A model generated the notes under the pieces. That model saw only the letters and a list, made by a program, of their open reading frames with translations. It had not been told where the DNA came from and searched no databases. A DNA stretch of 63,102 bases, the filler included, from Klebsormidium nitens (taxonomy: Eukaryota; Plantae; Klebsormidiophyceae): assembly GCA_000708835.1 (NCBI GenBank). It is 4 parts of 4 records of this genome, joined end to end, with 100 filler letters (N's around TTAATTAATTAA, not from the genome) between each part and the next. Parts side by side here need not be neighbours in the genome. Positions count along the whole stretch, not along the records: positions 12,594 to 42,211 come from DF237792.1; 3 more parts are not named here. One strand, given 5' to 3'. Within the stretch, counting starts at the first letter, position 1. Each line of letters starts with the position of its first letter. The translations under genes and the position numbers were made by a program. This document shows, piece after piece, positions 12,494 through 42,000 of the stretch.

Positions 12494-13301
12494 NNNNNNN
12501 NNNNNNNNNNNNNNNNNNNNNNNNNNNNNNNNNNNNNTTAATTAATTAANNNNNNNNNNNNNNNNNNNNNNNNNNNNNNNNNNNNNNNNNNNNCCCTCTG
12601 GCCTGTTGGAAGGGGGAAGGCGGTCAAGCGCAAAAAGCGATGTCAGAAAGGGGCCGTTTTTAACGATCAGGCGAGCTATCTCGCGGGGTAAAGCGGCCGT
12701 TTCTTGAAGTATCGTCAAAGCCGGCTTGAAATGTTCCGTCAAAGCTTCCTTTGAACTTTCGGGAAGGAAGGGTAGTCTATTACCAATGAAGATGGAAGCT
12801 GGATCAGTGGCTACAAAGCTGGCCCTATTCGATCTCTACAGCTACAGCTAGAGCAGCTTTGGAAGAAGCACTAGGGAGGCGCAGGCAGCTGCCAGGCGGC
12901 TCAATGTACTGTTTTACAAGCTGCAATTCTGGTTTCAAAGCCCTTAGGTAGCACCAAGGAGACAGCATTTACAAATCTTGTTGGGGTTTAAGCAAACATC
13001 CTGCAGTAAATCTAGAGATAGCAAGCTGCAGAAACAATGCTCGAGGAACGAGTGGCAGACTGATTGTTACAACCTGTCTTTCAATGCAAGTAAGGGAATA
13101 GGAAGCATGGTAGGAGTGGAATCAACTACCTAGGGCAGACTCACTGACAAGTTGGTACAGTTGGTGCAGCTCAATAAGGGTTTTCCAAATGAGGCTCCAG
13201 CACCAAGAGAACTCCTCCTTGTCCTGCTAACATAAACAGCAACTGGTGCACATCTAGGAGAATGGCTGCTGATAAGACGTGCCGGCGCAAAGGCTGCCGA
13301 T

Positions 13302-14972
13302 ATGAGGTGCTCCAGGTGTAGTGCAAATGGGATTGACGTGTGGTACTGCACAAGAGAGTGCCAGGCTGCAGACTACAAGGCTCACAAGCAGGTTTGTCAC
13401 CGCTAACAATATTGCAATTTATGTGGAGAAACATCCCTCTTCACTTCTGATCTTCCTGCTTGCTCGGTTCAGCACGTACCTCAGTCCCAGCTTCTGACTG
13501 CCTCACTGCATTTCTGCATGGTTCGCAAGCTGTATTGCTGAGGGTCTGAATGCTGCAAGATTATGTTCTGGCTCAAATTGAACACGATCAGCCTACTATC
13601 AAGGATTTGATTGTTTTGAATCAAATGCTGTTGCATAATTCTCTCGTTTTGCTGTGTTTGTTTGCACCTAAATCCTGTGAGCTTGCAAGTGTTATGACTA
13701 TTAGGGTCTGGATGAGAGATGAGGGGCTTGCCCAGACTGGGGTGTGTCAGGATCAGCCTTGTCATCGCTCTGCCAGATTCAAGCCAAGTCAATGTCTCAA
13801 GTTCAAGGGGCACACATTTTGCATTCCGCTCTATGTGCTCCTTATGGTATGCCTTACACAAGGTTCAACTACGAGGCAGTTCTTGCCCGCACGCCGTCTG
13901 ACTGAGTTCCTAACATAGTTTTGGAATGCTTGAACCTCATCTGAGCATGTCCCAGGGACTCACAGGATCCTTCTCATGATCGTGCAAAGGCCAAGCCCCT
14001 AGTCTCCATTTGTAATGTCCAAGAAATTCTGCTCACTCTTACGTGCTTTTCTTTCTTAGCGCAGGCCTGCAAAGCTGGGGTAGCAAGCTTCGACTCCACC
14101 CATCCAGAAACCACTTCCTATGGAAACCGCATGTTCACGTCGCAAGGCCTTCCAAAGGGCCTCCAAACAGTTGCCGCTTCCAAAGACAATCCCCGGCAAT
14201 GGTGCGAAGGTCCGAGCGAAAAGCGGACATACATACGGTTTGTAGACTCATTCCGACTTCGAACAGAGGACGAGTATTCGTTCAATGGGGACGTGTCAGG
14301 ACTGTATGCGCAAGAAGACCCGATGCCGTGCTTCAAGCGGTACTTGAAGAAGGCCAAGGCAAAAGGGCTGATGCCAGGTGAGGAGCAAGATTCATCGACG
14401 ATTTTCAATACAAGAAATTCAAAAAGCCCACTCGAGCTGACAATCACACCCTTATTATGGCTTAAGACTTGAGCGAAGGAACTGATGAAGATGAGGAGAT
14501 ACTGTCCAGATGCTTGGAGGCCGGTCTTTGACCTTCAACCGTAGGAACGTTGATTAGATTGCCTCTGACGATTTAAGATAGCGGGGAGAAACTTGACTTG
14601 ACAATCAGCGTGGCAACTTTTGACTAAAAGAGATATACCAAAAGAAGCAGCCGCTCGTTGCAACACTGTTTAAGGGTTGGTCTCTGTACCCTTTAATCAC
14701 GGTATTGCCCTTCGACCTGCCTCGTAAAACACACCCCTCTCGCAAGTGCAATCCCGATTCTCAGTGCTGCTCTCCTTTGGCCAGACTGGTGGAACGCTGA
14801 AAAAGAGGCCGAGCTTCTGGACGTGGCGCGCTCCGACAAGTGGGCGGCGATCCACTTAGCGGTCGAAAAGAGTGACATCACTGAGCATTACGGGTATGCT
14901 TCGATGGAGCATATGGTCCTCCGCGGTTTGGCCGAGCAGGTTACGGGAAGTAGTGTTATGTCGATGTTCTAA
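13302..14972 (+). CDS. zf-MYND protein with a conserved helical C-terminal domain; exons ~13302-13391, 14065-14377, 14785-14972 (5' end uncertain)
   Basis: Spliced: RCSRCSANGIDVWYCTRECQAADYKAHKQ|ACKAG...FVDSFRLRTEDEYSFNGDVSGLYAQEDPMPCFKRYLKKAKAKGLMP|DWWNAEKE...WAAIHLAVEKSDITEHYG...LRGLAEQVTG...*. Splicing completes HKQAC in phase 0 and GAC in phase 1. The first CxxC of MYND is not clearly present. Confidence 0.8.
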
Positions 14973-16723: not shown

Positions 16724-19700
16724 GTTCTTCCTCAAAGAGCTCGTCGATCCCCGGGCCAACACCGCCGTCGTCCAGACTGCCCAGCCAGTAGTCGTCCTCC
16801 CCCTGCAAAAAGGTGGTGTCTCGGTCACTTCGGCAGCAGCAGAAAACGAACATTGACAGAAGCGTCGAGACTCGAGTCATCTCTCGAATATGTTTGTGCA
16901 GGTACTTACGGAACCGCGGCTGATTGCCTGAAGGGCAAGATTTGCATGAGAATCTAGCTCTTCCAAAACCGTTCACCATTCATGAGACATTTAAATGTCT
17001 GCGCAACGTGCACGGATATCAAAAGAATAAGCAAGTTCCCCTCGCCCACTAGTCGACCACCACTTCTCAGTTGATACTTCGTCTCCTCTTCATGGATAAC
17101 AAGCAGAAAGACAGTTCCTCCGCGAACACGTTCAGGAAAGGCTGACGTAAGCAAGGCTGACCTCAGCAGCCGTCAGCGATCGAATCCGCGACGGGCTGGT
17201 GGGCATTTGCGCCGCCTCCGCCATTCCCGCCTCGTCCCGCAAGAGCGCCCCTTCTCGCAGAATCGCCCCCTCTTCCGGCCTTACTGGCCGGGGCTGGGCC
17301 GGCTCTGCAACCGCCCCGTGGGCGTCATCCGTTTGCATCTCCTCCAAGTCGGGTTCGTGACGGCTGCAGAAAGTGGGTTAAGTTTGAATAGCTAATAGCA
17401 GCCTGCCTCACCAGTGGGTTACGGGATTGTTGAGAGACCATTGTTTTGCATCGTTCAAGTTGGGTTCGTGACGGCTGCCAAAAGTGGGTTGAAAAGCATG
17501 ATCTGGGAGAAAAGCAGCCTACCTCACCGGTGGCATACGGGATTTGTGTTCTTTGAAGAAGGAATCATTGTTTGTAATTCCTCAAATCAAGTTTGTGACG
17601 GCTGCAAAAAACGGGTTGTCTTTAAACTGAGGGGAAGCAGCCTGCCCAACAGTGGATTACGGGGATTGTGTGAAGAAGCAGATCATGGGTTTGCAAGTCC
17701 TCTAAAGTCAAGGTCGTGACGGCTTCCGAACATGGAATTTTGCAAATCCAGGGGAAAGCAACCGGGGGTCCTAAGAGACTAGTTGGTCACGGGGTCTGTG
17801 TTGTGGCGAAGAAGCAAATCGAAGTCTGCGCTTACATGAAGTCGGCTTCGTGACGGCTGCGGACAAGTGATGAAAGGGAGCGGGGCAAACAACGGGGGGG
17901 CTGTGCGGTTTGGTACTCATGAATTTTTTGCTCCATCATCAGATATTTGGGTATCCAACAAAGACACTCACCAGAGGTAGTTGGTGAATCTTCAGCTTCG
18001 TCCCATTCAGACGGCTCCGGAAAAAGGGATGCTGGAATTTGTCACTGCAGTGTCACCTTTCCTTCAAGAACGCTGAGCACGACCAGAGTGATCGACCGAA
18101 GAACTAAAGAGAAAGGGTGGCCGCATGTCTTCGTCACAAGTGCTCACCTCACAAGGTAGACGTCAATCGGCCCGGCAGTGCTCCGCAAAATGATTTGATA
18201 GTTACCCTGCAGGAAATGACAGACTTTCACTTCGTATAGAAACAGAGAACGCCTTCATCTGCAATTCCCTTAGACAGCTTCGAAAATTGCTGTCCGCTGT
18301 CCTTATGCGTTCTCTGATGGCTGCTTACATCAGTTGAGTGACGAAACCATGGGTCTTTAGGTTCCTCTCGTTCCTGAATGTCTCCCGCACATCTACAGCA
18401 GAAGTCATGTTTCACTTCATTTATCATTGTCCGCAATGAGCTTCAACAGTACCCTTCCAGGTATTTTCTCTCGTCTCTTGAAGATAAACATGCCCTTAAT
18501 CCTGGGGACATGTCATTCTGAGCCACTTTCCTGTTTCAGCATCCCAAAATGGCTCTATGAGCCACAAACCCGAAGTTATGAAGGAAAGTTTGAAATTGTT
18601 AAGAGGAAGGAGAGTCACGAGCTGCGCATTTCTTACTGTATCCTCCACATTCGGCGCTTCGACTTCGGTCCCCGGCGGCGCCTTGATCGCGATCAAGGTT
18701 TCCCTCTGTGCACAGAAGACGCTAGATGAGCCGCCGAGACTCAACTTCGTGCAAAGAGGTGGCGAGTATGTTACTTCGGACCCATTTCAATATCTAGAGG
18801 CGGCAGCCAAACATGAAAGCGATCTGCGCGGACTTGGCTAATGGCCCCAGTAAAAGCAGGCAGCAGAGGGTTGCGCAACCTAGTACCGTCTTCAAGGGCA
18901 CAACGCGGTTTCGATACCAACACTGAACAATCTGAGGACTCGGCGTCAGACCACACCACGGGAATCGAGCAGATGCTTACATTGGACAACTATCCGCGGA
19001 AACATAAAAGTGCTGGCATTTTTCATAAATTCTGCCTCCTAATCTCAAAAGCGCTGCGCTAAAACCCCTAAAACCCCAAAAGCTCGAAGCCTGGCGAGCT
19101 TACCTCGAAGCCTGGCAAGCTTTTGATGTCCTGCTCCGTCACGTAGAGCCATCTGAGAAACGTCCGTCAAGGAAGCGACAAACGCAAGAAACCCGTTCAG
19201 GGAAATTCGATGGAAAGCAAAGTTGTGAAACGTTGCAAGCTTTGAATGCTCGAAAAGGTTGTAGGCAAACCGTTTCTCGAAAGAACTCAAGAAGTCTGAT
19301 CCGACGTATCGCACAAATAGGTAGTGTGTGGTGGATACTGTTTACTGTGCTCATCCTCCTGAAACGCTGCCACCCTTTCTCGCATCATCCTGCAAAGGGA
19401 TCCAGCGAAGTATATAACATATTCGACACGCTTATGGATGATTGCAGCAGCAAGGCTGATGGGATAAGGATCGTCTTGTGAAGTATGCTCTGACGATTAT
19501 CGTTTCCGTCCACGTACACGAAAGATCTGGGCTTGGATGCTCTGCACGTCAACGAAGTCATCTCACCCTTAAACCATCGACGGACGAACGGACGTTAGAA
19601 AGAAGCGGAAGCGGAATCTAAGGTCTAAATTCTACCCTTGTCACCTTCCTTTGATGAATCGTCGACTCGAGCTAGGAAAGAATGACAGCACCGTCGAGTC

Positions 19701-22700
19701 GCACTAAGGTTCGACAGAAAAGCCGGTCAGTTGCGCTTAGGTAACGATTACACTTTGACCCGAGCTCTAAGCCAGACTCTAAGCAAGTTTAAGCTTGGAG
19801 TTGACGCTCACTGTATCTGTTCGTCGAGCGCCATCTCCTGTTGCTGCAAGTGATCCAGCTCCGCTTGCAGCTGGGCCGTCTCGTCCAGCGACTCGACCGT
19901 CGTCGTTCCCGCAGCACCCCTGCAACCGCGGAGCGATGGGTTAGCTTAACGATGCGGGTTAGGGTTTGACCGATTGGAAGTCGCTTCATTTACCAGATGC
20001 AGTTTTGAGTCTCGATCAGCGACTCGACCGCTGTTGTGCCCGCAGCGCCCCTGCAACGGGTTAGGCTTAACGAATCAGGTTGAGGTCTGAGCAAACGGGA
20101 CGCAGCTGCATGTACCAGATTGCTGTTTGGAGTGTCCTTCAGCAACTCGACCGTTGTTGTGCCCGCAGCGCCCCTGCAATTGCGGCTTTATGGGTTAGCC
20201 TTAATGTCTCAGGTTAAAATTTGAGCCGATTGGAGTTGCTGCAGTCACCAGATATGGTTTCGAGTCCCGTCTAGCAACTCTACCGTCGTCGTGCCCGCAG
20301 CGCCCCTGCGATTTGCGTAATTTTGGGTTAGGCTTAACGATTCGGGTTAAGGTTTTAGCATCCGGGAGTCGCTGCATTTACGAGATGCTGTTTGAGGAGG
20401 GGCGTTCAGCGACTCGACCGTTGTCCTGCCCGCAGCGCCCCTGCAACCGCGGATTCATAGGTTTGGCGTAACGACTCGACTTAAGGGCGAGCAAACGGGA
20501 GACGCTGCATGTACCAGATTGCTGTTAAAGTCGCGTTCAGTGACCCAACCGTCGTTGTAGCCCCAGCGCCCTGCAATTGCCACTCATGGGTTAGGCTTAA
20601 CGTCTCAGGGTAAAGGTTTGAGCATTTGGGAGTTACCGCATGTACGAGATGCTGTTTGTGGAACGTTCAGCGACTGAACCGTGGTCGTGCCTGCAGCGCC
20701 CCTGCAATCGTGGATTCCTAGGGTAGGCTTAACGAGTCGGGTTAAGGTTTGAGCGGTAGGGAGTCGCTGCATTTACCAGATGCTGTTTCGAGTCTCGTCC
20801 AGCAACTCGACCGTCGTTGTGCCTGCAGCACCCCTGCAACGGACTTTATGGATTAGGCTTGACGACTCGGATTAAGGTCGGGAGTGGCTGCATTTACCAG
20901 ATGCTGTTTCGAGTGACGTTCAGCGAAGCGCCCGTCGTTGTGCCCGCAGAACCGCAACTGCGGATGATGTGTCAGTTTTAAGGTTTACTCTCAGGTCCGA
21001 GCAACTCTTGTCTGACCAGAAATAGCGGGTCGTAATGCTGTCGTCCGCAAATGCGACTATCGGTGCCCGGAGCACCCCTGCAACCGCCAATCTGGGTGGG
21101 CTTTACGGTTTGAGGTTTTAGTATGAGCAGCTCTTGTCTGACCAGGACGATGTCGTAAGACTTTCGGTTAGCGACTTGACGGCCGCCGGGCCCAAAGCGC
21201 CTCTGCAATCGCGGGGGAATTATTTTTGCTTAACGGTTCACGTTCAGGTCCAACCATGTGAAGTTGACTCTGCCTGGGCCAACAAAGAAAGGCCTTAATT
21301 TACTCTCCCCTATTCATCTCCCCGTGCATGAAAGAAACTTTCCGAAGCAAGATGATGAATACGGACCCTATGAAAAACGGCGTCTTCAACTGAAATCAAG
21401 AGCGTTACGTGCGAGTTGAGTCATCTGGACGTCTGCTAGGCACCTCGTCGTCGAACGGATACACGGCCGCAACAAGAAGCGGTCAAAACTTTCTGACTTC
21501 TGCTTTCCGAACCTCTTGCCACGTCCTCACACGCTACTTGTGTTCACGTCACAAATACAGGTCTGGTAATGTTGCTATGGCGACCAGAATATAGCTTAGG
21601 GGAAGGTTCCCGAACATAAGCGTGTAGAGCGTGAAATGGACTTACTTCCACAGAATGTTGTTCTTCGACTTCTTCTCGATCAACCCGATCCCCTCCAGCA
21701 CGTTCGTGATGTCGTATATTCGTCGCTTTTGTACCTGGAAGCGGGACAAGAGGTTGGTCGCTTGCAGCGACATTTCGGTTCTAGTGTTCCAATGGATCTT
21801 GACGTCTCTTAATCTAGTACGCAAACTTCAGCAGGAACGCGACATGGAGCGAAGCGGACCTAGTGACCAGTGAAAAGACCCCTGCATGTCACTACCGTCT
21901 AGGTTCTTCAAAAAGCATGCAGACTAAAAGATCATGCAGCTTTATTAGTCTGTCTCTTCATGCAATGCTCGTGCCTTCATCCCAACGGGGATTAGACCAG
22001 CGACTCGTGACTGTCCTGTACCGGTGGTAAGAACTGCCTGCTATACTTACCTGCAGCGTTTCAGCAGCTTTATTTAGGTCAACGACACCGTCAACCGCCT
22101 GCTTTATAAGGTCGATGAAGCGCTTCGTAAGCAACCCTGCAAAGATCGCAGGAGGAGGATTGGAAGGATGACGGGGAACGGTGGCAAGTGGCGCTAACAT
22201 CAGGAGTGCGATTGTTTCAAGGGAACTCTGAATTGGCCGATTCCTGTCTTCGGCGCAAGAACAAAGTTTACGAAGTTGCAGACACGGATAGCTCCCACTA
22301 CATACAATCAGCGACCATGTCATAAAAAACCCTAGGTGCTGACGCCCAAAACTGGAAGCCAAACTACAAAGGCTTGGCAAGTCGTCTTTGTCCACCTGGT
22401 GGATTCCGCCGGATATATCGGGAAGTAGGTCGCACTCACCAAGAGACTGGTCGTATCTGCTGCAAGAGCTGCCGGGAGTTTGCTGTGACGCACTCGGAGG
22501 TGACCCTGCAGAAAAAGAAAGAACCTTTGTGAGCTTTAGCTGGAAAGGTAGCAAACAGGGAAGAAGACACGAAAGCCTGATGCATTATCGGGTCAGGGCA
22601 ACAAAAGATTAATGAAACAAACTGCCTGAATAAAGGGAAAATGACGAATGCTTTCCAGATGTCTAGGTGCAGAATGAAGGACAAAGTGGCTTTCATCACG

Positions 22701-24868: not shown

Positions 24869-26539
24869 GGCTCAAATGAGCGATAAAACTGCACTCTTGC
24901 ACGACAAGCTTGTAGGCAAGGTTGTTTTGAACCAAAAATCCGTCTACTTACTCATGCAGGCTGCTGAAAAGGTGACTGTGGCATGCATTCTAGAAGCTCT
25001 GGTTGTGCAACAGCTACAATCAGGTGATCCTTCGTGAGGTTAGGGATAAGCCATCTCGACGATTAAATGGGCGAGCGGAGGAGATTGGAATGCTGCAGAC
25101 CTCACAAACCGAGAAGAGTTTTCATACTCTGAGGAAAAGAAAGAAGAGAGCCCCTCTAGCAAGCCTATGGCCAGGACAGGAGCCTGTCAGAGGAGGTAAC
25201 GGTCTCGTTAAGAATGCAAGTACCCGCTCTTTCACTTAAAGCACCTCTTGCCGATATCCTTGAACGGAGAAGACGCCTGGCAACTGTCCGGGAAACGAGC
25301 CGTGCAGCTGCTCTTCAGCAGGATCTTCAACCTCCTGAACCTCCTCCCCCCAAGAAGCCATGCAAGTGCTGCGTTTTGCTGAGTGGGGAGTCCAGTTCAG
25401 CTGATCAGCCAAAATTCAGCACTTTCTTCAAATGTGGCTTTTAGAAGCAGCCCCTTGCATCCTCTAACTACACCGCCTAACCCACGTTTATGACGTTAAT
25501 TTGCGCGCCTTCAGAGCAATGAAGGTGGAAGTATGGCAATCAACCGCCTGCAGAACCCTAGGTCACGTTTCGGGTCACGAAATGGTCAAACCNNNNNNNN
25601 NNNNNNNNNNNNNNNNNNNNNNNNNNNNNNNNNNNNNNNNNNNNNNNNNNNNNNNNNNNNNNNNNNNNNNNNNNNNNNNNNNNNNNNNNNNNNNNNNNNN
25701 NNNNNNNNNNNNNNNNNNNNNNNNNNNNNNNNNNNNNNNNNNNNNNNNNNNNNNNNNNNNNNNNNNNNNNNNNNNNNNNNNNNNNNNNNNNNNNNNNNNN
25801 NNNNNNNNNNNNNNNNNNNNNNNNNNNNNNNNNNNNNNNNNNNNNNNNNNNNNNNNNNNNNNNNNNNNNNNNNNNNNNNNNNNNNNNNNNNNNNNNNNNN
25901 NNNNNNNNNNNNNNNNNNNNNNNNNNNNNNNNNNNNNNNNNNNNNNNNNNNNNNNNNNNNNNNNNNNNNNNNNNNNNNNNNNNNNNNNNNNNNNNNNNNN
26001 NNNNNNNNNNNNNNNNNNNNNNNNNNNNNNNNNNNNNNNNNNNNNNNNNNNNNNNNNNNNNNNNNNNNNNNNNNNNNNNNNNNNNNNNNNNNNNNNNNNN
26101 NNNNNNNNNNNNNNNNNNNNNNNNNNNNNNNNNNNNNNNNNNNNNNNNNNNNNNNNNNNNNNNNNNNNNNNNNNNNNNNNNNNNNNNNNNNNNNNNNNNN
26201 NNNNNNNNNNNNNNNNNNNNNNNNNNNNNNNNNNNNNNNNNNNNNNNNNNNNNNNNNNNNNNNNNNNNNNNNNNNNNNNNNNNNNNNNNNNNNNNNNNNN
26301 NNNNNNNNNNNNNNCGGTACACGACACCACAGGCGTGGCGCAGAGGCGCAGGAGCCTGAGGCAGAGGAACAGCCTGACGAAGCGTTAAAACGAGGAACAG
26401 CAAAGCTTTTTCTGTCCAGGTTGCTGGAAGAGGGCCAGGGACATTTTGCAGGAAGGCTCCGCTTGCTGTGCTCGGTCAAAGGAAGGAATTGTGACGGTCC
26501 CAGATCTTTCCTGTCAAAAGTCTGTCTCCTGCTCTCCTC

Positions 26540-29500
26540 ATGGACCCGTCAGGGGCCGCAGAAAATGCTCCCGTAGGCGGCAAGGGAACGCCGCGGGGGG
26601 CTCGGGAGAGCAGCACTGGAAGCCCCCGCCGTGCTTTGCGGGAGGAAGATGAGAACGCAGTAAACTCGGTGCTTCTGGGGCCTGCAGCGCGGGAGGCCGC
26701 CAGTGGGAGGACGCAGTATGACGCTGACTTGGCGCTCGCACGAGCACTGCAGGTACTATCCAGGCTTTGTTGTCCTTGCTGGCTTGGCGCCTTTTGTTCT
26801 TGGGCTTTCATGTGAGGAGGTTTACCTGTGCAAGTTTGGGGAGGATGTCCTTGCCACGGAGATTGCACAGTGTTCCTGCAGGATTGTGGTCATCCGATTC
26901 CTGACTTGGAAGTGGCAGAGTGCTGATAAAGTGGTTTTCCTAACCTCCAGTCTTGTCAATAAGCAACTTGGTGCACCCGCAAGTCTTTGAAAGCTGTCAT
27001 GTTCTATTTTTAGAGGCCATGCACAAATATCAGCTTTTGTTTGTTTTGTCCGTGCATGGCCAGGGTGAGTTGGAGACTGCAGTGTAACTTTTGGAGGAAT
27101 AGACAGCATTGCAATACTTCACGAGATCCGCAAGCCTGTCAATCTGGCATGCAGCGCTTTGAAATCAGTGCGAATATCAGATTTCCTGCTGATGGTAGTG
27201 GTTACGATAAGCTTTCTTTGAAAATATTGAAACTTGGAGCATGCTCCCAAGTAAGTGAGCGGCAACACAGATGCTTTAGTGATGCTGCGGATGTCAATGT
27301 CAAAGCGGCTTTAGGAGATGATTCAGGCAGTGACAGCATTGTAGAAGATCAAAGTGGTGCACGAGATTCCAAGGGGCAAGGTCCTGCTTACAGACGTTGA
27401 TTTGAAGAGCGGCATGAAGATCTGGAACTTTAGCAAGCCCCTTCCCGTGGTCTGTTATTTTACCCTGCTGTGGAGTCTTTGACCTCAAACCTGCTGCTAC
27501 TGGAATTCTTCGAATCTAGAGGAATTTGTAGGAGTGGTTTGTTGCTGCTTGTAGGCTTCGGTGCTCCTATAAGCCCATGGGTTTCATTATCTATTTCAGA
27601 TGATCTGCCTCATACTTATGGCCAAGAGGATTTGAGAGGCTTGCAGTGGCTACGTGCCCTTTTCTCTTCACTAAAGGCGCCCACATCAGAACTGCGGCAC
27701 TCTTACAACAACATCTGAACCCAGCATCAGTCAAGAAGCTCTTACGTTCAGCATGCATCACCCAGCAAGTTTCTGTTACCATCTTGTGTTTGGTGCAGGA
27801 AAGCAAGATTACACCATGAACTGAATTGCACCATTATCTTTACTGACAGGAACAAGAGCGCGCATACTACCTGCTCAGGGAACAGAGCATGGCGGCGCGC
27901 AGCGCGTCCGACCTGGAAAATGACGCTGAGGGGTATGCCGGGGGGGAGGGAGAAGACGACATCTACGAAGGGGGCGAGTACGTGCCTGGCGAAGAGGGGG
28001 GAGAGGGCAGCGCCGAGGGGGCCCCGTTCGATGACGAGGCGTTTGCGAGGGCGCTGCAGGAAGCAGAGGAGCGGGAGGCGGAGGAACGAGTGATGGCGCT
28101 GGCGGGGATGAATGTTGCCTCAGGTGATGTGCCGTGTCTGGGCTGGCCTTCAATTGTAAAGACTGAAGTAGTGAAGTCGATTGGAGTGTTCCTTGAGTTG
28201 GAGTGGTCGATCTAGCCTCTTTTTCGTTTCAGACAAGGCTTTCTATGGTTGGGGTTCAGATTCCGCTGGTCGCTTCAGGTTCCCAGCTTCCGTTTGCAGA
28301 ACGTTGGAGGTGCTCTTTGGATGCTCAGTTGTCAACCCACGTCTTTTCTGCACGTTGTCTGCTTAAGTCTTCTTTGCACATTGTCAGCCCACGTCTCTTC
28401 TGCACGTTGTCCGCCCATGTTTCTCCTGCGCGTGTCAGCCGAGCAGCTTGCAAGCTGGTCACTGAAACGTGTGCCCCTATCGACCACAGATGACGCGTAT
28501 GGGAGCGAGGATGAGGAGGACGACTGGGAGGAGGACGGCATCGATCCAGACAATATGACTTACGAGGTGGGCAGGTTCTTGATTCGATTGGTTTCAACCC
28601 CCTCTGTCGCAAGTCCGTAAGAGTGTCTGTTTTGTTTGGTTAGTGCTAAGGAGTCCGTCTGCTGAAAGCTCGTGTTTGAATTGTGTTTGGCAAGAGCTTG
28701 TGCCCGACGGTCCGGTTTGGTAAGAGCGAGTGTCCGAAGGTTGTTTGTTAAGGCTTGTTCGAAGTTTGTACTGTTGCTAGGTTTTCTCAAGTGCCCACAT
28801 GCTGACGCAATGTGCTGGCCTGATGTTTTAGGCGATTGTAACGTACCTGGATACGACCCACGTCAAAAGTGATCCTTCTTGAGCTTGTTGCAGTTGCAGA
28901 ACATCAAGTCCGACCAGCGCAGTAACTTGCCGTTTGCACTTCCTTGGAATGGCTGTCAGCTTCTGCTAAGCATTTCATACTCTTCGTTCACGGAAGTTGC
29001 CTCTCGGTCCGATACAAGGTAACGAAAGGTCAACAGCAATCTGTTCGGAATCCTTCCTGACCAAGGTTGACAACTATTCATATTTACTGGACATCCTTCT
29101 ACCAGTGATCCGTGCTGACAAGCACAGCCCTTCCTTCATAATTTCGATATTCTATCCTCCGAAATTCATTAGCGCCCAATCCGACGGCAGAAGAGCACAA
29201 GTTGAACCCTTGATACATGTTCCACCCGATTGATCCGTTCAATCGGTTGGCGGCGCCCTATGCCCACTTTACTAGATTTATTAGGCGTTAAGTGGCACTG
29301 GTGACACTTGAGTGCAAGAGAATATGTTCGTTTGCGGACCATATCGCATCTTGAGTTCTGCCTCGGGCGCCCGTTATGCCCAGCTGCCCCGACTCTAGTC
29401 GTCAGGCTCTACAGGTCACACGGCGCTCTGTGTTAATTCCGCCTGCATTTTTGCTGAGCAGGATTCGACGGCGCTGGCAGAGGTGGTGGGTAGCAACGTT

Positions 29501-32500
29501 GCCGGTATGATGCTGTATGCCCGATTCACCATTTTATTATCATCTTTGGATTACTGAGTCACTCGAATTCTTGATGCTGTCTGCTTTTCCGGTGTGCAGG
29601 AGCTGACGGCGCTGGCGGAAGTGGTGGGCAGCAACGCTGCCGGCATGGCGCCATGTGCCTGATCTTAGCATTTCATTATCATTTTTGGACAAATGAGTTA
29701 CTGATCTTTGAGGCTGCCTGCTTTTCCGCTGTGCAGGAGCTGACGGCGCTGGCAGAAGTGGTGGGCAGCGAGAGCAAGGGCCTCCCCGCGGAGGCGATTG
29801 CGCGGCTGCCAAAGAGCGCCTACAAGGCGACGCGCCGGCGGAGGAGCTCCTCCAGCGGCCAGGAACAGTGAGACACCTGTTCCTGCAAACCTGTTAAACG
29901 ATCGCTTCTCGTTGGGTTCAGTTGTCTGATCAATCTTCCGGCATTATCTTTTACTGGGTTGGTCGTCGTTTCTTTCTTTGTCTGGGTTGTATGCTTCGGT
30001 TGGAAGACCGCCGCTCATAACCAGGGGCAAAGTTAGTTTCCAAAAATGGCCAAAGAAGTAAGAGGATTTGTCCTGGATACTTTGGCTGAACTCTTTTGCC
30101 TCGAAACCACCATTCTTTTTGGCGCTATTCTTCCTGATCCATTGCAAAATAGTTTTTAAGGTTGGAGTGAATCTGCACGAGATCCTGTCCGGTCTTGCTG
30201 CAAAACCGTGCTTTCTTTAGGTTACTCGTGTAGCACAACCTGCCTCTTTTCGAGTTGATGTTTATTTCTGAGGTCCAACTTCGCAGTCAGAGACGGTTTT
30301 TTCAAAACTGAGGATCTTAGTACCTTTTGTGTGCTGTCTGTAGCTTGAGAAAACGCTGAAATCAAAGTAGAGTTGTTGGGGTGTCTGCAACGTCAAAACA
30401 TTTAGGTCTGACTCCTGTCAACCCGTTGATTGCTGCACCTATGCTTATGCCTACTCTCTTACGCCTGACCGGAGCGTCGCATGCATGCTGAGCTGACTGG
30501 ATCAAGCCTAGGACGTTGAGAGGCGACGTTTTCAATTGGGAACACTGAGCTAAGAGGATTTTCTGGACTGCTTCCTCGTGCTACTTTTCTTGCCAGCGTC
30601 AGGGCTCGCTGGCAACTCTTTTCTTCGGCATTTGCATCCCTTCATCTGCATGATGAAGTGGTTCCAGTCATGCTTCGGTCGAAGACATTGTTGTCGGGAG
30701 CACTTTCCGTCGTCCTTACAGTCATTTGGCAAGACCCTAACTGCCCGGGGCTGCTGGTTGCACTTCGTGTAGCAACAATCACAAGTCTCTCGAGCAGAAT
30801 TGGCAGTGACGTGCTTATGCAGTGACGTTGCTCCTTGGATGTCACTGAATACCATTTCGGACCGAAGCCAGAGTCAAGAACAATTCTAAATCCTCATCTG
30901 AGGATGTCTGATCAACCTTCTCGACTTTGCCAGACTTGCGGGCCAGTTACGCCAGTCACCAGGTTGTAGAATGGGACTGTCGGTTCATAATTTCCGCATT
31001 CTGACCTCTGAATGTGCCCAAATGAGCAACGTTTCCTCAGATTGTCTCCTACCTGACCGTTTTGTCTCGGTGGGTTTTTTTTTCTGGTCTTTTCTCTGCC
31101 TTTCGTTTGAGAATCATATTGTCACAAGGCATGGAGTCACTGGAGGGGGTCCACACCAAAGCACCAGATCAGAACGCAAATGGCAAATGCTTGCTGACCT
31201 GCAAGTCGTTGGTGAAGATGCTGGCACATCCGATATTTCAGCTTGTCAGCCCATCTCCTGCTGCCTGAAGCCACTTTGTCCTATCGCTTGCATTGCTCAT
31301 CACCCATTTCTGCGAAGACTTCAATGATAAAGCGCAAATTCGTTGTCCTTGCCGGGCCTCATGCTGGTTCTGATTCGTTTGCTGGGTTTGCAGAAAGTGT
31401 ATATTAGGTTCAGCACAATCGAAAATTGTGGATTAATGTTGTTCTGAAAGCAAATCATCACGTGGCTTGCTTCGGCTGTTCTGCTGGGAATAGGAAGAGC
31501 TGGCAGCCCTTGCGGCAAGCAACCACGGCCCCCTTGCAAAGACAAGGAACTCGTGGTGTACTTTGAGAGTGAAAGTGTGGCATGTGGCACTTCTTCGCTG
31601 GATCAAAGCGCTTGCTGTGCTTGAGACTTAACTGTTGCGCCTCGTCCATCTATTCATCGTCACGATCTTATCATCCGTTACACTTGAATCTCCTCGTCTT
31701 GCTAGCACGTCAAGTATTCGTTCCACTGAAAGTCCACCCCTGTTAACAAAGAAGATACTGCAGCACATAGGAAACGGTGCAGGAGGCACGCCTGCGCTCG
31801 ACTGCTTAGCTTTTCCAACTGCACCCGTGAGCAGACAACTTACAGAACGTTTGAAACCTAGAAAAACCTTGAAGTCGCATCATTTCGCACTCAGATTCTT
31901 GCCGGCCAGGATAAAGCCCTTGGTGACGCTGATGGCTCGCTACTCTGCAACATTTCCTTGATGCTGGCTATCGAAAGTTGGAGTGATTTTGCAACCACCG
32001 CTGTTCCTGTTCGGATCTGTTGAGCGAGAACTTTTGCACATTGATTGCCCGGAGGTTTGCCCTGCGAAATCCGTCAGTTATGCGGAAATCTCAGGCTATT
32101 GAAAAGTTGCATCATCTGTGGTCCCTTGACACGCGCGTCGGTATCTTGATTGCTTCTCAGCATCATGCATTCGGAAGCGGGCAATGACGAGATGGGCATA
32201 GTCTGGCGGGCTGAGGAACGCCACACCTCTATGCAGGCTTCCACTGACCCGATTTGGAGCCATTCTCGCTGCGTTGCTCGTTTGATCACATCTGCTTGAA
32301 GTTTTGTGCCCTTGCCAGTGTCAGTCGGCGCAACCGTGTCCTGCGCTGATCGACGAACTTCCTTTTGACGTTCGGTTGCCAACTCAGTTATCCGACAAGC
32401 ATCCAGAGTTTTGCTCCTGCGCTAATCTTTTGCCGATGATGGAAACGTGTTGAGTGTTACTCGGGTCGAGCTGTGGTTTGGCTCCGTTTGCTCCTTGAAG

Positions 32501-34626
32501 CAAAAAGCGAACAAAGGACGGTGATCGGCAGTGAAGACTTGAGAAGCTTCTGACGTCGCTCTGCATGCCGAGACGGCTCTTGGACAAGCTCAGAAGCTGG
32601 CTTTGCAATTCTGACGGCAGGGTCTAATCACCTTCGCCGAGATGCTTCGCAGATACAGGCTGAAAAGGCTGTAGATATCCGGCACTCCAGGCGTTTTGTT
32701 TTGTAAACATTGCTGGTCGCAGGGTCGGAAAGAGCGACGTTCCGTTTTTTGCGACGTGCTTTGCTCACCAGTTCGTTCCGATTCGACTGCTATAACGGTT
32801 CGAATAGTCTGCTTTTCATCCGGATTCCTGTGCACACAAACCAAGCCGGCTGCGATTGCAAGTGTCGCGAGTGAGCTCTCGCTTTTTGGACGGCTGCCAC
32901 TGAAGACGCCCTGTGGCAACCAAGTCAGACGGCGGTTTCGTTTGTTCCTTTGTTCGTCTGTTTGCCGCGGTCAATATGCGAGTTCTTGGTCGAAGCTTGA
33001 GCATAAGGTCCCTCGTTGATGTCGCCTGGACATTGCATCCCAAGGATGTCTCACCGGAATTGCCTCTGTCTTTCCCGTTCTTTCTACTGACCGCCGTGTT
33101 TCAGCTGCGAATCTGGCACAGCTCGGTCACGGTCCTCTGGTCTCATGCACGCACCATTTTAGTTGCCAGCTGCATCAACGGCTGAACAGTGGGCGTATGA
33201 GTCAGACCTGCTGCACATTCTCATCATCCTGAAAGATGCACGGGAGTTGTCTGGGACACATTCAAAATTCTCGGCAAGGATGACTGGATAGCGCATGATG
33301 CGTAACATCAAATGTGAACTTCCCCCAGTCTGAAGCCTTGCTTAAGCTATGACCATGTTATGTTTCCAAATGCGCCCTTTCGGCTCTTTCACAGAAGCTA
33401 TCATTTGCCTTCCGGATCGCTTTTGGGCATTCGCGGTGTAAGCATGCAGACTGCTTCTTCAGACCTAGGCGAATGGAATTGAAGCTCCTTCTCTGATCAG
33501 CAGCTCAATAGCGCGGAGTCTTGAACGAAAGAGTCTCGTTGCTGCCGCAGGTGCGTCATCTGCCGGGTGGAGTTCGAGGATGATGACGTCATCACGACGC
33601 TGCCGTCGTGCAAGCACCACTACCACTCCCCCTGCATCGAGCAATGGCTCTCCATCAACAAGGTCAGCCTCAGAAACCTGCCACCTTGTCTTTCCTTTCC
33701 TTTCTCCTCTTTCTTGACAAAGCCCGTTGAAGCCCACAACCGTCCGAGACTTCGCTCCAGTCTCCAATCCTCAGTCGGCGGATGAGAGAAAGACGAGCCG
33801 ACTATCCAGTTCTATGAAAATGTACCCTCGACAGCTGTTGAATGTTACGGTTTGGTTTTGGTCACATATGCTGGCGGATGCAGGGCTGTTGGCCGCAGCC
33901 ATAACGAAATTAACCTTATAAGTAAGGACTTCACCGTAGTCAGACCCCTAGCACGGCCGTCTTTCCAAGCGGTCACCGCAGTAATGATGCTAGTCCCCGG
34001 CACAACTTTGCAGCCGTCTCGTGACGGGAATCGTCACTATATAATTCCTGGAAAGACCGCGATGTTCCGTCCCAGATCTGGCCGATATGCACACTGATAG
34101 ATAGGTTGCTTCTCAGAATCGGATATTATGGGCAAAGAGTGCCACAACTGTGACCTCCTCTCAACGTATTTCATCAGTAGGCAGATGGAGGAAACGGCTT
34201 CCCTTGCAGCATGTTCACAACTTGAAGCCTTTGCGATGGTAAAGTGGGTAAACAATGATCTGCTGAGATCCTCAACTGGATCCTGAAAATTTATACCCAA
34301 GGGCTTACACTTTTGATACTTGCGTGCAGTTGAGCGGTGGGGTACTCAGAAGCACTCCCCCAAATGCTGCTAGTTGTCCTATTTGTTCGACGATTCACTT
34401 TTGGAGCGGACAAAGGCTACCGAGCAGATGGGTCTTCTTTCAACGAAGACATCCGCCCGCTTTTCCAAATCCGAGCGTCAAAGCTGAACTGGCGACTGTT
34501 TTTTCTCTGCAGATCTGCCCTATGTGCCTGACAGAAGTGACCCCAATGAAGAGTAGAGCTGCGAGCAGGCGACCCTCTCACCTCGGCGCGGCAAAGTCTG
34601 AGCCGTCCAGTAGTGACTCCAAGTAA
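26540..34626 (+). CDS. BBR: BIG BROTHER-RELATED-like RING-H2 E3 ubiquitin ligase; exons 26540-26752, 27850-28123, 28490-28566, 29737-29867, 33551-33662, 34513-34626
   Basis: DADLALARALQ|EQERAYYLL; DDEAFARALQEAEERE; DPDNMTYE|ELTALAEVVGSESKGL; Q|CVICRVEFEDDDVITTLPSCKHHYHSPCIEQWLSINK|ICPMCLTEV. This is the motif order of plant BBR. All phases are consistent. The start may extend into the upstream gap. Confidence 0.92.
29447..29736 (+). repeat. Two upstream duplicates (~138-bp period) of the acceptor plus first 43 nt of BBR exon 29737
   Basis: GCAG|GATTCGACGGCGCTGGCAGAGGTGGTGGG...GCCG|GTATGA and GTGCAG|GAGCTGACGGCGCTGGCGGAAGTGGTGGG...GCCG|GCATGG precede the true exon. Confidence 0.9.
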
Positions 34627-39759: not shown

Positions 39760-42000
39760 CCTTCGTAGACCAGGGCATTGAGAGATCCAGCTGCCAGATG
39801 GGCAGCCGTCTTTCTGATGAAAGGGAATCTACTAGGGGCAGGCCTAGGAGAATCGGTGTAATTTTGGCCGGCAAATATGTATCTTCAAGTGGACCTACTG
39901 TAAATCATTGTTGTGGAAGTCTTGAATCCTGCTATTTTTGTCCACTTGATACGATTTTTCCATCTGCTCACGGCCTTTTCGGTTGCACTAGGCTACTCAA
40001 CCGATTCCAACTCAACCAGAATTTGCGATTGTGAAGCCCGTTGGCTTTTGAATCCAACTCAACCAGAAGTTGCGATTGTGAAGCCCGTTGGCTTTTGAAT
40101 CAAATCAAACGTTTCTGCCCAGACTGCTGGTGAATTACCTAGGCTCTCTTTACAGATGGGCGGGAGACGGTTAGGCTTTAGCCCTAGTTGTCTGGTTTTG
40201 CAGCCTGTTTTGTCCGTCGATCTCCAGATATTCATCTCTAACCCCGATATTGCAAGCAGTTGGACCTTATGGATGTCGACCGGATTAGGTCTGATCGGAC
40301 TTTGGTGAAGGCCACATTTTGCGGCTGTGCACGGTCTCGATTATGTTTGCCAGCCAATGGTTCCCTTGCTGGGCTGGAGCTATGAAAAGCGGACAGTTTG
40401 ATGACGTCACTTGACGAGGTCATCGTCCGCACCGTACCTCTGTTCGCTGAAGCCCTAGTCCACTGGCCCTATTAGTATGAGGTCAGCCTAGTGCCTATAT
40501 GCAATATTGTTTTGTCTCTGGTATGTTACCTCTGGTGTATTCTGCTTCTGAAGTAACAAGAACTGTTGTGCCTCATGAAACTGATTCTGCGTGCTCTGTC
40601 TGGTCCATTTCCATGAGTATCCCCGGTTGTGACGGACAGACTTTTCCTATTCGACTTAACAGTCTCAGCGTAATTTCTGATTGTAGAATATCGGAACTAG
40701 AGGCAAAAGAATGAACGAGACTGTGAGCCTGCCGCCTGGCAATGATGGCTAGAAGGGTACTTGCCCTCCATGAAGCGTGATTGTTCAATCAGGCGTCAGC
40801 AAAGCAAAGTATTTGTTGCTCCCATCGCCAGATGCGCATGCGTATCGATACTCACTGATAATCAGAACCAAGAGACAGAAGCGCCGTTTCGATCTTGGAC
40901 AGGCTCGGCGCAAACGTTGCCGGCCCTGCCTGCACTGTCGTGTTTGATAAGCAACAAAACTTTTTCAGTTCCAAGTTAAGATGCTCAGACCACTGTCGAC
41001 CCCTGTTTTTGCGGTTGGTAACAAATGTCGGATCGAGCTGGCCGTTGCCGGCTTTTTGTTCTTGTTATACAAACGTTTGAGGAGACGGTTTCCGAAGTTA
41101 CAAGTAGTAGCTTACCGTTAGTGCTTTACTTTGATCAAAGAGCACCATCAAAGCAGGCCGTCAGTAGTCTGAGGTTGTGGGGAAGTTTGTGGGACACCTT
41201 TTGTTTAGATACCAAATTACCACGTCAAATTTTCAAAATTGTTGGGTTCACGGTTGTCACCACTTTGTTAGGGCAAGATCTCTTTGTCTCTGAGTCCGCT
41301 ATGCACGTGAAGTGCCGCGCTCTCCAGAAACGTGCTGACAAATGCAAAGTCTGCCTTTGAGCCCGCGTTGGCGTGTCCTTAGCTGGTTCTGTCCTTCAAT
41401 CTCATTCTTGAAGGGCGAAGTAGCGGCACTCCTAAGCCGCGGGTTCTCTCAGAGACTGACGTTCCGCTCTGTTTCCGACCTACTGATTGTTGCTGTCAAG
41501 GTAGTGGTCAAGACAGGCGGCGAGGATTGTTGGGCAGCCGTTGACGTTGCTGCAAAATATGAAGGTTGATTGAGTGGGTTCAAAGTAGGAGCCTTCAACA
41601 TGAGGCCGTCTCAAAAGAGTCAGATTGCTGATGTGTTGGTCGGACCCTTCTTCTACTTGGCTTCGTAAGAGCTAAAGCGGTTGACGAAAGACGCCGATTT
41701 TTGCGGCGAACCTGCTTTCTATTTTCCGGGTCTTTGCAGCAATCTGCATCCGTTTGTGGATCGCGATCGCGACACTTGATGATCTTTCGTCAAATGGAGT
41801 TAGGCAGATTGGAGTCACAGAACAAGATTTTACCCATGATATCAAAGACCTGACGGTCCGGAGACATGGTTTGAGTAGGCGAGGACGAAGTGACCCCTTC
41901 GGTGTTCGGCCCAGCCCTGCGCCATCATCAAGAGGTGCTTTTGTACGAAGCATGATCTGAAGCCGGTTATCCAAAGTTTTCATGGTTTGTATCTCTCGAA
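39760..42000. repeat. Copy 2 of the diverged ~2.3-kb direct duplication; may be a decayed multi-exon gene on the minus strand
   Basis: Same blocks as copy 1. Short exon-like segments with AG/GT ends on minus (e.g. NVNGCPTILAACLDHYLDSNNQ) are frameshifted in copy 1. Confidence 0.75.

Follow-up and report, generated by a model that had tools for sequence, protein, structure and literature searches.

Introns are known to accumulate tandem repeats, which a passage in PMC9940879, citing Zhao et al. 2014, notes as over-represented in the introns of Chlamydomonas. Exon sequence can also be copied in place, as when tandem exon duplication yields mutually exclusive or cassette exons (PMC8373072) or when an intron is gained by tandem duplication of an AGGT segment (PMC4974935). 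Exon-like units within an intron can in turn influence splicing; in human erythroblasts, decoy exons in SF3B1 intron 4 promote intron retention (PMC6097662). Here we analyze a 63,102-nucleotide (nt) stretch of DNA from Klebsormidium nitens (assembly GCA_000708835.1; four parts joined with filler, hereafter the window), in which an intron of an E2F gene contains a ladder of ten tandem units, each resembling the 3′ splice junction at the intron's own end. The literature searched contained no report of 3′ splice junctions arrayed in tandem.

The ladder lies on the minus strand of a 30-kb piece of the window (positions 12,594 to 42,211, from DF237792.1), where it follows a unique intron head and runs to the intron's 3′ end (Table 1). 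Its ten units measure 122-135 nt each and together span ~21250-19920, or 1.33 kb. Tandem Repeats Finder (TRF) returned periods of 132, 267, and 395 over 19882-20878, and an offset scan, which gave 0 hits on shuffled sequence, located the repeat at 19861-20985. Each unit is laid out as a copy of the real exon's first ~42 nt, ~15 nt of extra sequence, a GT, ~70 nt with CTAAC/TTAAC-like motifs, and TTGCAG; we refer to the part between acceptor and GT as a decoy exon. Units U3-U10 are 72-83% identical to one another, and U1 and U2, at ~45-60% identity to the rest, remain clearly homologous and still match the unit consensus (z = 13.6 and 4.5). Because the units differ by 17-45%, the array is old and is no artefact of assembly.

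The array is of local origin, and its unit has no copies elsewhere within the window. Homology between the units and the real exon ends after GGACGAGAC, which accounts for 42 of the exon's 108 nt, and the unit tail has no similarity to the exon end and next intron (score 15; shuffles average 14.7). Since only the first 42 nt were copied and the tail is unrelated to the exon end or the downstream intron, the units are copies of a junction and not of a whole exon. The decoy exons differ by indels of 1-2 nt, giving lengths of 56-61 nt, and four of the ten are divisible by 3, as expected by chance. These four (U1, U4, U8, and U10) are phase 2-2 and stop-free, and the other six shift the frame if included.

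The signals that flank the decoys are of unequal quality. Nine of the ten decoy acceptors are identical to the real one. All ten decoy donors have GT (GTAAAT in four, GTACAT in three, GTCAGA in two, GTGACT in one) and none has G at +5, unlike most real donors of the E2F gene. On a donor matrix that was not rebuilt after two of its ten input donors were found to be misplaced (corrected to GTATCC for exon 19389-19339 and to GTAAGT for the exon ending at ~22051), scores run from -2.8 to 4.7 for the decoy donors and from 6.9 to 10.3 for nine of the ten matrix donors, with -0.9 for the tenth, which is one of the two misplaced; among the gene's 316 GTs, the 90th percentile lies at 4.6. For exon 19389-19339, reading frame and homology (EDEHSKQ|WLYVTEQDI) demand an end at 19339 with the weak donor GTATCC, not the GTAAAC six bases upstream. 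This real donor, placed from the frame, is as weak as those of the decoys, so weak donors cannot be dismissed.

The host gene spans ~23.2 kb to 16.7 kb of the window on the minus strand. The E2F/DP winged-helix DNA-binding domain (PF02319) matches with E = 1.5e-16 at 21642-21824(-) and with E = 1e-4 on the exon before it; the marked-box exon is matched by PF16421 at E = 5e-5, under the curated cut-off since the match covers one exon. For the DNA-binding domain, identity to E2F homologues is 80-97%. In tblastn comparisons with 21 full-length E2F homologues obtained from a HMMER search, the exons of the gene fall in family order, with coiled-coil and marked-box dimerisation exons downstream of the DNA-binding domain as in the homologues. 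With both the DNA-binding domain and the coiled-coil/marked-box region present, the gene is identified by homology as an E2F transcription factor. Joining 21646 directly to 19919 restores the frame and yields a linker between DNA-binding domain and zipper of ordinary length relative to the homologues; a repeated linker motif occurs in none of the 21. An earlier note on this DNA had placed a ten-unit ladder, with CTAAC-like branch sites, an AG acceptor, a copy of the exon start, and a GT donor in its units, between the DNA-binding and dimerisation domains of E2F. Pfam and tblastn agree on the host and the position, the ladder is borne out by the TRF periods, the offset scan, and the consensus scores, and the alignment recovers each component. 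The decoy coordinates and lengths that the note gives are identical to those in Table 1, the single lost acceptor is that of U3, and its assignment of phase 2-2, stop-free frames to the 57- and 60-nt units was correct.

We also examined the position of the ladder-bearing intron in other E2F genes. A search with a 60-residue open reading frame (ORF) from the DNA-binding domain returned 1,228 E2F fragments, and none of the 120 matches listed is identical to the window. A word search with a 198-residue ORF gave no match, and a full HMMER search gave 2,781 E2Fs with no close relative among them; the collections searched likewise yielded no protein of this genome. A degenerate DNA pattern derived from the E2F peptide identified four loci in Joint Genome Institute (JGI) metagenomes, all from other organisms and all without the ladder intron. 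In these four loci and in 13 of 13 database fragments read, the frame continues unbroken past NI(Q/L)WK, indicating no intron there; examples without an intron at the 21645/19920 position are P0001, P0004, P0007, P0013, P0071, P0092, P0096, P0112, P0114, and L001-L004. Judged from these sequences, the intron position is not widely shared among the E2F genes compared. Two E2F representatives from other organisms, P0121 and P0122, carry the entire DNA-binding region twice in one predicted protein, which could reflect tandem duplication or an artefact of annotation or assembly.

The architecture recurs elsewhere. The 30-kb piece contains five tandem arrays, and all three with a period above 100 nt, namely the ladder described above, a second in another E2F intron, and a third in a RING-H2 gene, share the acceptor-junction layout (Table 1). 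In each, 33-42 nt from the start of an exon and 70-105 nt of the intron tail before it are repeated, with periods of 111-138 nt. The three are unrelated in sequence (z < 3 in all comparisons), so each arose from its own junction. Upstream copies were detected at three of ten acceptor junctions tested (z = 19-36) and not at the other seven, and downstream copies at none of eight donor junctions tested. Across the three ladders, AG is present in 15 of 16 decoy acceptors and GT in 15 of 16 decoy donors. That unrelated ladders of the same geometry occupy two other introns points to a process at the level of the genome and not to a device specific to E2F. The last copy of the second ladder, starting at 17363, is probably an exon; entered in phase 0 from exon 18044-17972, it reaches a stop after 12 codons. 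The first decoy of that ladder (17856-17836) is a putative 21-nt in-frame micro-exon with a strong GTAAGC donor.

Table 1. Ladders, decoy exons, and host-gene features in window coordinates (minus-strand features read from high to low)
Feature	Position	Strand	Details
Ladder-bearing intron, 1,726 nt	21645-19920	-	borders GTAAGT...TTGCAG; frame restored by 21646-19919 join
Unique intron head, 395 nt, outside repeat	21645-21251	-	z ~ -1 against unit consensus
Partial first unit, intron-tail part only	21250-21203	-	ends in first decoy acceptor ATTGCAG; z = 6.5 against consensus; alignment
Decoy exon U1, 60 nt	21202-21143	-	in frame, stop-free; donor CTG|GTCAGA; strongly diverged (~55-60% identity to other units)
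Decoy exon U2, 61 nt	21077-21017	-	frameshifting; donor CTG|GTCAGA; strongly diverged
Decoy exon U3, 58 nt	20955-20898	-	acceptor lost (TTGCAG to TTGCGG); donor GTAAAT kept
Decoy exon U4, 57 nt	20833-20777	-	in frame; donor GTAAAT
Decoy exon U5, 56 nt	20701-20646	-	frameshifting; donor CTC|GTACAT
Decoy exon U6, 56 nt	20570-20515	-	frameshifting, stops in incoming frame; donor GTACAT
Decoy exon U7, 59 nt	20440-20382	-	frameshifting; donor CTC|GTAAAT
Decoy exon U8, 57 nt	20305-20249	-	in frame; donor GTGACT
Decoy exon U9, 58 nt	20173-20116	-	frameshifting; donor GTACAT
Decoy exon U10, 57 nt	20050-19994	-	in frame; donor GTAAAT; its intron tail is the true intron 3′ end
Second ladder, other E2F intron, four decoy copies	17870-17364	-	copies of ...GCAG|CCGTCACGAACCCGACTTG...; period 111-134 nt; z = 18.8
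Second-ladder decoy starts	17856, 17722, 17601, 17474	-	GT donors GTAAGC, GTTGGG, GTGAGG (two)
Third ladder, RING-H2 gene, two decoy copies	29400-29736	+	copies of junction ...TGTGCAG|GAGCTGACGGCGCTGGCAGAAGTGGTGGGCAGC; period 137-138 nt; z = 35.6
Third-ladder decoy exon, 43 nt	29462-29504	+	out of frame; donor GTATGA
Third-ladder decoy exon, 43 nt	29600-29642	+	out of frame; donor GCATGG (GC for GT)
Real RING-H2 exon	29737-29867	+	reads ELTALAEVVGSESKGLPAEAIARLPKSAYKA; first ~33 nt copied in third ladder
RING domain, RING-H2 gene	33525-33782	+	PF13639, E = 1e-10
E2F exon	22137-~22051	-	tblastn, family order; donor GTAAGT (corrected from frame and homologues)
E2F DNA-binding-domain exon 2	21734-21646	-	3′ end phase 2, donor GTAAGT at 21645; PF02319, tblastn
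E2F exon, linker and leucine zipper start, 108 nt	19919-19812	-	donor GTGAGC; tblastn to coiled-coil region of homologues
E2F exon	19389-19339	-	tblastn; end inferred from reading frame
E2F exon	19152-19104	-	tblastn, family order
E2F exon	18705-18637	-	tblastn, family order
E2F exon	18206-18148	-	tblastn, family order
E2F C-terminal DYW...IDELF motif	16799-16728	-	tblastn, family order

Several other identities for the main array were considered and rejected. Tandem duplication of a whole exon with its own splice sites does not fit the partial copy and the unrelated tail, nor does duplication of an alternative exon with length and frame maintained fit the lengths and frames of the decoys. An intron derived from a transposon or introner is contradicted by a unit confined to one intron in the window and by ladders that share no sequence. 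Small nucleolar RNA (snoRNA), microRNA (miRNA), or another RNA family was set aside given no Rfam match within the array even at E = 1 and no fold more stable than shuffled sequence (z from 0 to -1.7), and coding on the opposite strand given no Pfam match within the array on either strand. Recursive splice sites (AG|GT) do not match the unit acceptors, all of which read CAG|GGG or CAG|AGG, and intron gain by duplication of an AGGT segment does not match the unique intron head or the junction GGAA|GGGT.

Other sequence features were noted in the same 30-kb piece. The ladder units contain telomere-like AACCCTAACCC motifs, in U10 at ~19960-19970 on the minus strand, and the next E2F intron has a short (TTTTAGGGG)-like run at 19059-19081 (+); searches for a telomere-type repeat and for a spliced-leader relic of the dinoflagellate kind found neither. 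The two short tandem repeats, at 28322-28440 (+; 26 nt, 4.4 copies) and 40003-40096 (+; 47 nt, 2.2 copies), have 94-96% identity and span no recognisable splice junction. The divergently oriented E2F and RING-H2 genes are separated by a run of N at ~25600-26320, an assembly gap that marks the scaffold as draft, and an open frame at 13236-13403 (+) has, by eye, a MYND-type zinc-finger pattern (CSRCSANGIDVWYCTRECQAADYKAHKQVC).

The explanation we place first, and to which we give about an even chance, is that a 3′ splice junction was long ago amplified in place into a minisatellite whose decoy exons are mostly skipped. A segment of ~131 nt across the junction, comprising the last ~89 nt of the intron (with CTAAC/TTAAC branch-site-like motifs and TTGCAG) and the first ~42 nt of the exon, would have been duplicated head to tail ~ten times in place, and the copies would then have diverged by 17-45%. 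Productive E2F mRNA would join 21646 straight to 19919, leaving the upstream copies as decoys with a perfect acceptor and a weak donor but without the real exon's other 66 nt and strong donor. Exon definition probably operates in this genome, where exons of 44-131 nt are set among introns of up to 1.7 kb. Under exon definition, a partial copy that lacks most of the exon and the strong donor would be largely ignored, and for that reason partial junction duplications would be nearly harmless. Occasional inclusion of a decoy would produce either a frameshifted substrate for nonsense-mediated decay (NMD; six units) or a linker insert of 19-20 residues (four units). The cause, on this account, would not be an adaptation of E2F but a property of the genome, which would tend to generate or put up with tandem duplications that span 3′ splice junctions.

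A group of observations weighs against such a history having been free of selection, although the conservation statistics rest on 8-10 related units and serve as indications only. When the 139 hexamer windows in the alignment of U3-U10 are ordered by conservation, the TTGCAG acceptor comes first and the donor window ATCTGG/TCTGGT second, a ranking that also holds among the 59 CpG-free windows. The consensus contains seven AG and six GT dinucleotides, and the splice AG and splice GT alone are kept in 8/8 units; given that only 13.7% of all dinucleotides are so retained, this corresponds to p ~0.02. Variability within the unit peaks in the 18 columns preceding the AG, a pattern also found at working 3′ splice sites. 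In the exon-like 42 nt, the ratio of non-synonymous to synonymous differences (pN/pS) is 0.54 in the real frame versus 0.9 and 2.8 in the others, a bias to which two simulations assign p = 0.014-0.04. These features fit decoys that are seen by selection. Finally, neutral duplication alone leaves unexplained why all three arrays span an acceptor and 33-42 nt of exon; this acceptor bias with its narrow exon overlap could stem from selective filtering or from mutation linked to the splice site.

Both the above-background conservation of these dinucleotides, the splice AG and GT, and the synonymous bias are real although weak, and they keep alive a functional reading of the units as poison or decoy exons. 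The exon-like part as a whole is conserved no better than the intron-like part (pairwise difference 0.22 versus 0.25). The earlier note had claimed that splice signals are kept despite divergence and had set, as its test, how well AG and GT are conserved compared with the remaining unit sequence, with a value no greater than background counting against it. Conservation proved to exceed background in units that are 72-83% alike, at the modest significance given above.

Of the alternatives, we consider it possible, though on balance doubtful, that the ladder is a regulated array of decoy or poison exons. Spliceosomes bound at decoy sites would generate frameshifted NMD isoforms or stall removal of the intron, thereby setting the dose of E2F, and ten copies would multiply the effect. 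The proposal draws on the acceptor and donor windows being the best-conserved parts of the unit, on decoy acceptors that are identical to the real one, on the near-complete retention of AG and GT across the three ladders, and on the frameshifts that six of the ten E2F decoys and both RING-H2 decoys would cause if included. It also has a precedent in the decoy exons documented to promote intron retention in human erythroblasts (PMC6097662). Set against this, the decoy donors are weak, the acceptor of U3 has already decayed, the significance is modest (p ~0.01-0.02), and the same architecture in unrelated introns and genes removes any tie to E2F biology. The last point also divides the earlier note's suggestion of a poison-exon array: six of ten decoys would shift the frame if included, and the effect is possible in principle, whereas tuning specific to E2F is at odds with the recurrence of ladders elsewhere.

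A less probable alternative, which we regard as unlikely, is that a duplication mechanism is coupled to the 3′ splice site itself, either through breaks or template switching where polymerase or spliceosome pauses ~35-40 nt into the exon or through cDNA made from splicing intermediates, in which case the arrays would be a mutational signature. Within 29 kb, each of the three arrays whose period exceeds 100 nt ends exactly on an acceptor; the chance of this under random placement is, as a rough estimate, ~0.01. Their exon overlap (33-42 nt) and periods (111-138 nt) are narrowly distributed, and no donor-junction or purely intronic ladder of such size was seen in the piece. These are three cases from one 30-kb piece, however, and a selective filter could mimic the bias, since under exon definition a partial copy does no harm only on the acceptor side. 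Breakpoints are no longer readable in the diverged units, and we know of no duplication mechanism aimed at splice junctions. Such a mechanism would in any case be compatible with amplification of a mostly skipped junction and does not exclude it.

It is very unlikely that the units serve as in-frame coding cassettes, with U1, U4, U8, and U10 each lengthening the linker between DNA-binding domain and zipper by 19-20 residues. The four units have the required phase 2-2, stop-free frames, pN/pS is reduced to 0.54 in the true frame only, and the peptide start GAAGTTTVE is retained in most units. Four of ten in frame is nevertheless the chance expectation, neighboring units differ by indels of 1-2 nt, and private substitutions are mostly non-synonymous by a hand count on the alignment. 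Both decoys of the RING gene are 43 nt long and out of frame, none of the 21 full-length E2F homologues has a repeated linker motif, and the synonymous bias can also be explained by staggered copying from a constrained real exon or by CpG hot spots. The same considerations bear on the interpretation offered in the earlier note, of which the ladder, the frames, the lengths, and the AG/GT conservation stand. An E2F-specific combinatorial cassette is not supported, in view of the chance level of in-frame units, the weak donors, the ordinary linker produced by direct joining, the partial exon copies, and the two further ladders. An assembly artefact, a transposon or introner insertion, or a hidden cluster of RNA genes such as intronic snoRNAs can be effectively dismissed: the assembly gap does mark this as a draft assembly, but unit differences of 17-45% are beyond what read mis-assembly can produce, the window holds no further unit copies, the three ladders have no sequence in common, and the array has neither an Rfam match at E = 1 nor a stable structure.

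A broader proposal, which we advance tentatively and would not presently expect to hold, is that this genome carries acceptor-junction ladders systematically and that selection maintains their splice sites. They would then be either dose-setting decoy arrays acting through unproductive splicing or intron retention, or the trace left by a hitherto undescribed process of duplication, coupled to 3′ splice sites, that enlarges introns and seeds new exons. Were this so, E2F would be one visible example of a genome-wide system, and if the geometry and the AG/GT retention hold genome-wide, they would point either to a new way in which introns grow and exons are born or to decoy exons in wide use in a non-animal eukaryote. 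With ten near-perfect copies of a working acceptor ahead of the real one, this essential cell-cycle gene offers a natural experiment on 3′ splice site choice. If the arrays are neutral, they are still a warning to annotators, as gene predictors can easily thread pseudo-exons into their models.

Comparison with described systems places the ladder between several of them. Like intronic minisatellites, it consists of head-to-tail units of ~130 nt that are confined to an intron, of local origin, and without other copies in the window, with higher-order periods of 267 and 395 nt; unlike them, its unit is a 3′ splice junction in which each copy has an acceptor and exon start, the last copy works, and the splice dinucleotides are kept better than other parts of the unit. 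It shares with tandem exon duplication (PMC8373072) the copying of exon sequence and acceptor beside the parent exon, but it copies 42 of 108 nt, its donor is not the parent's, its frame is mostly broken, and it has ten copies where those systems have two to four. As with the SF3B1 decoy exons (PMC6097662) and NMD poison exons, exon-like units with splice-site-like flanks lie in an intron of a dosage-sensitive regulator. Decoys of the SF3B1 type are single, conserved across species, and backed by RNA, whereas the ladder is a tenfold array with weak donors that we read from DNA sequence alone. Intron gain by AGGT tandem duplication (PMC4974935) likewise duplicates an exon-containing segment whose copies supply splice signals. 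In the E2F gene, by contrast, an existing intron with a 395-nt unique head has been enlarged, the junction reads AA|GGG, and the start of the intron does not copy the exon.

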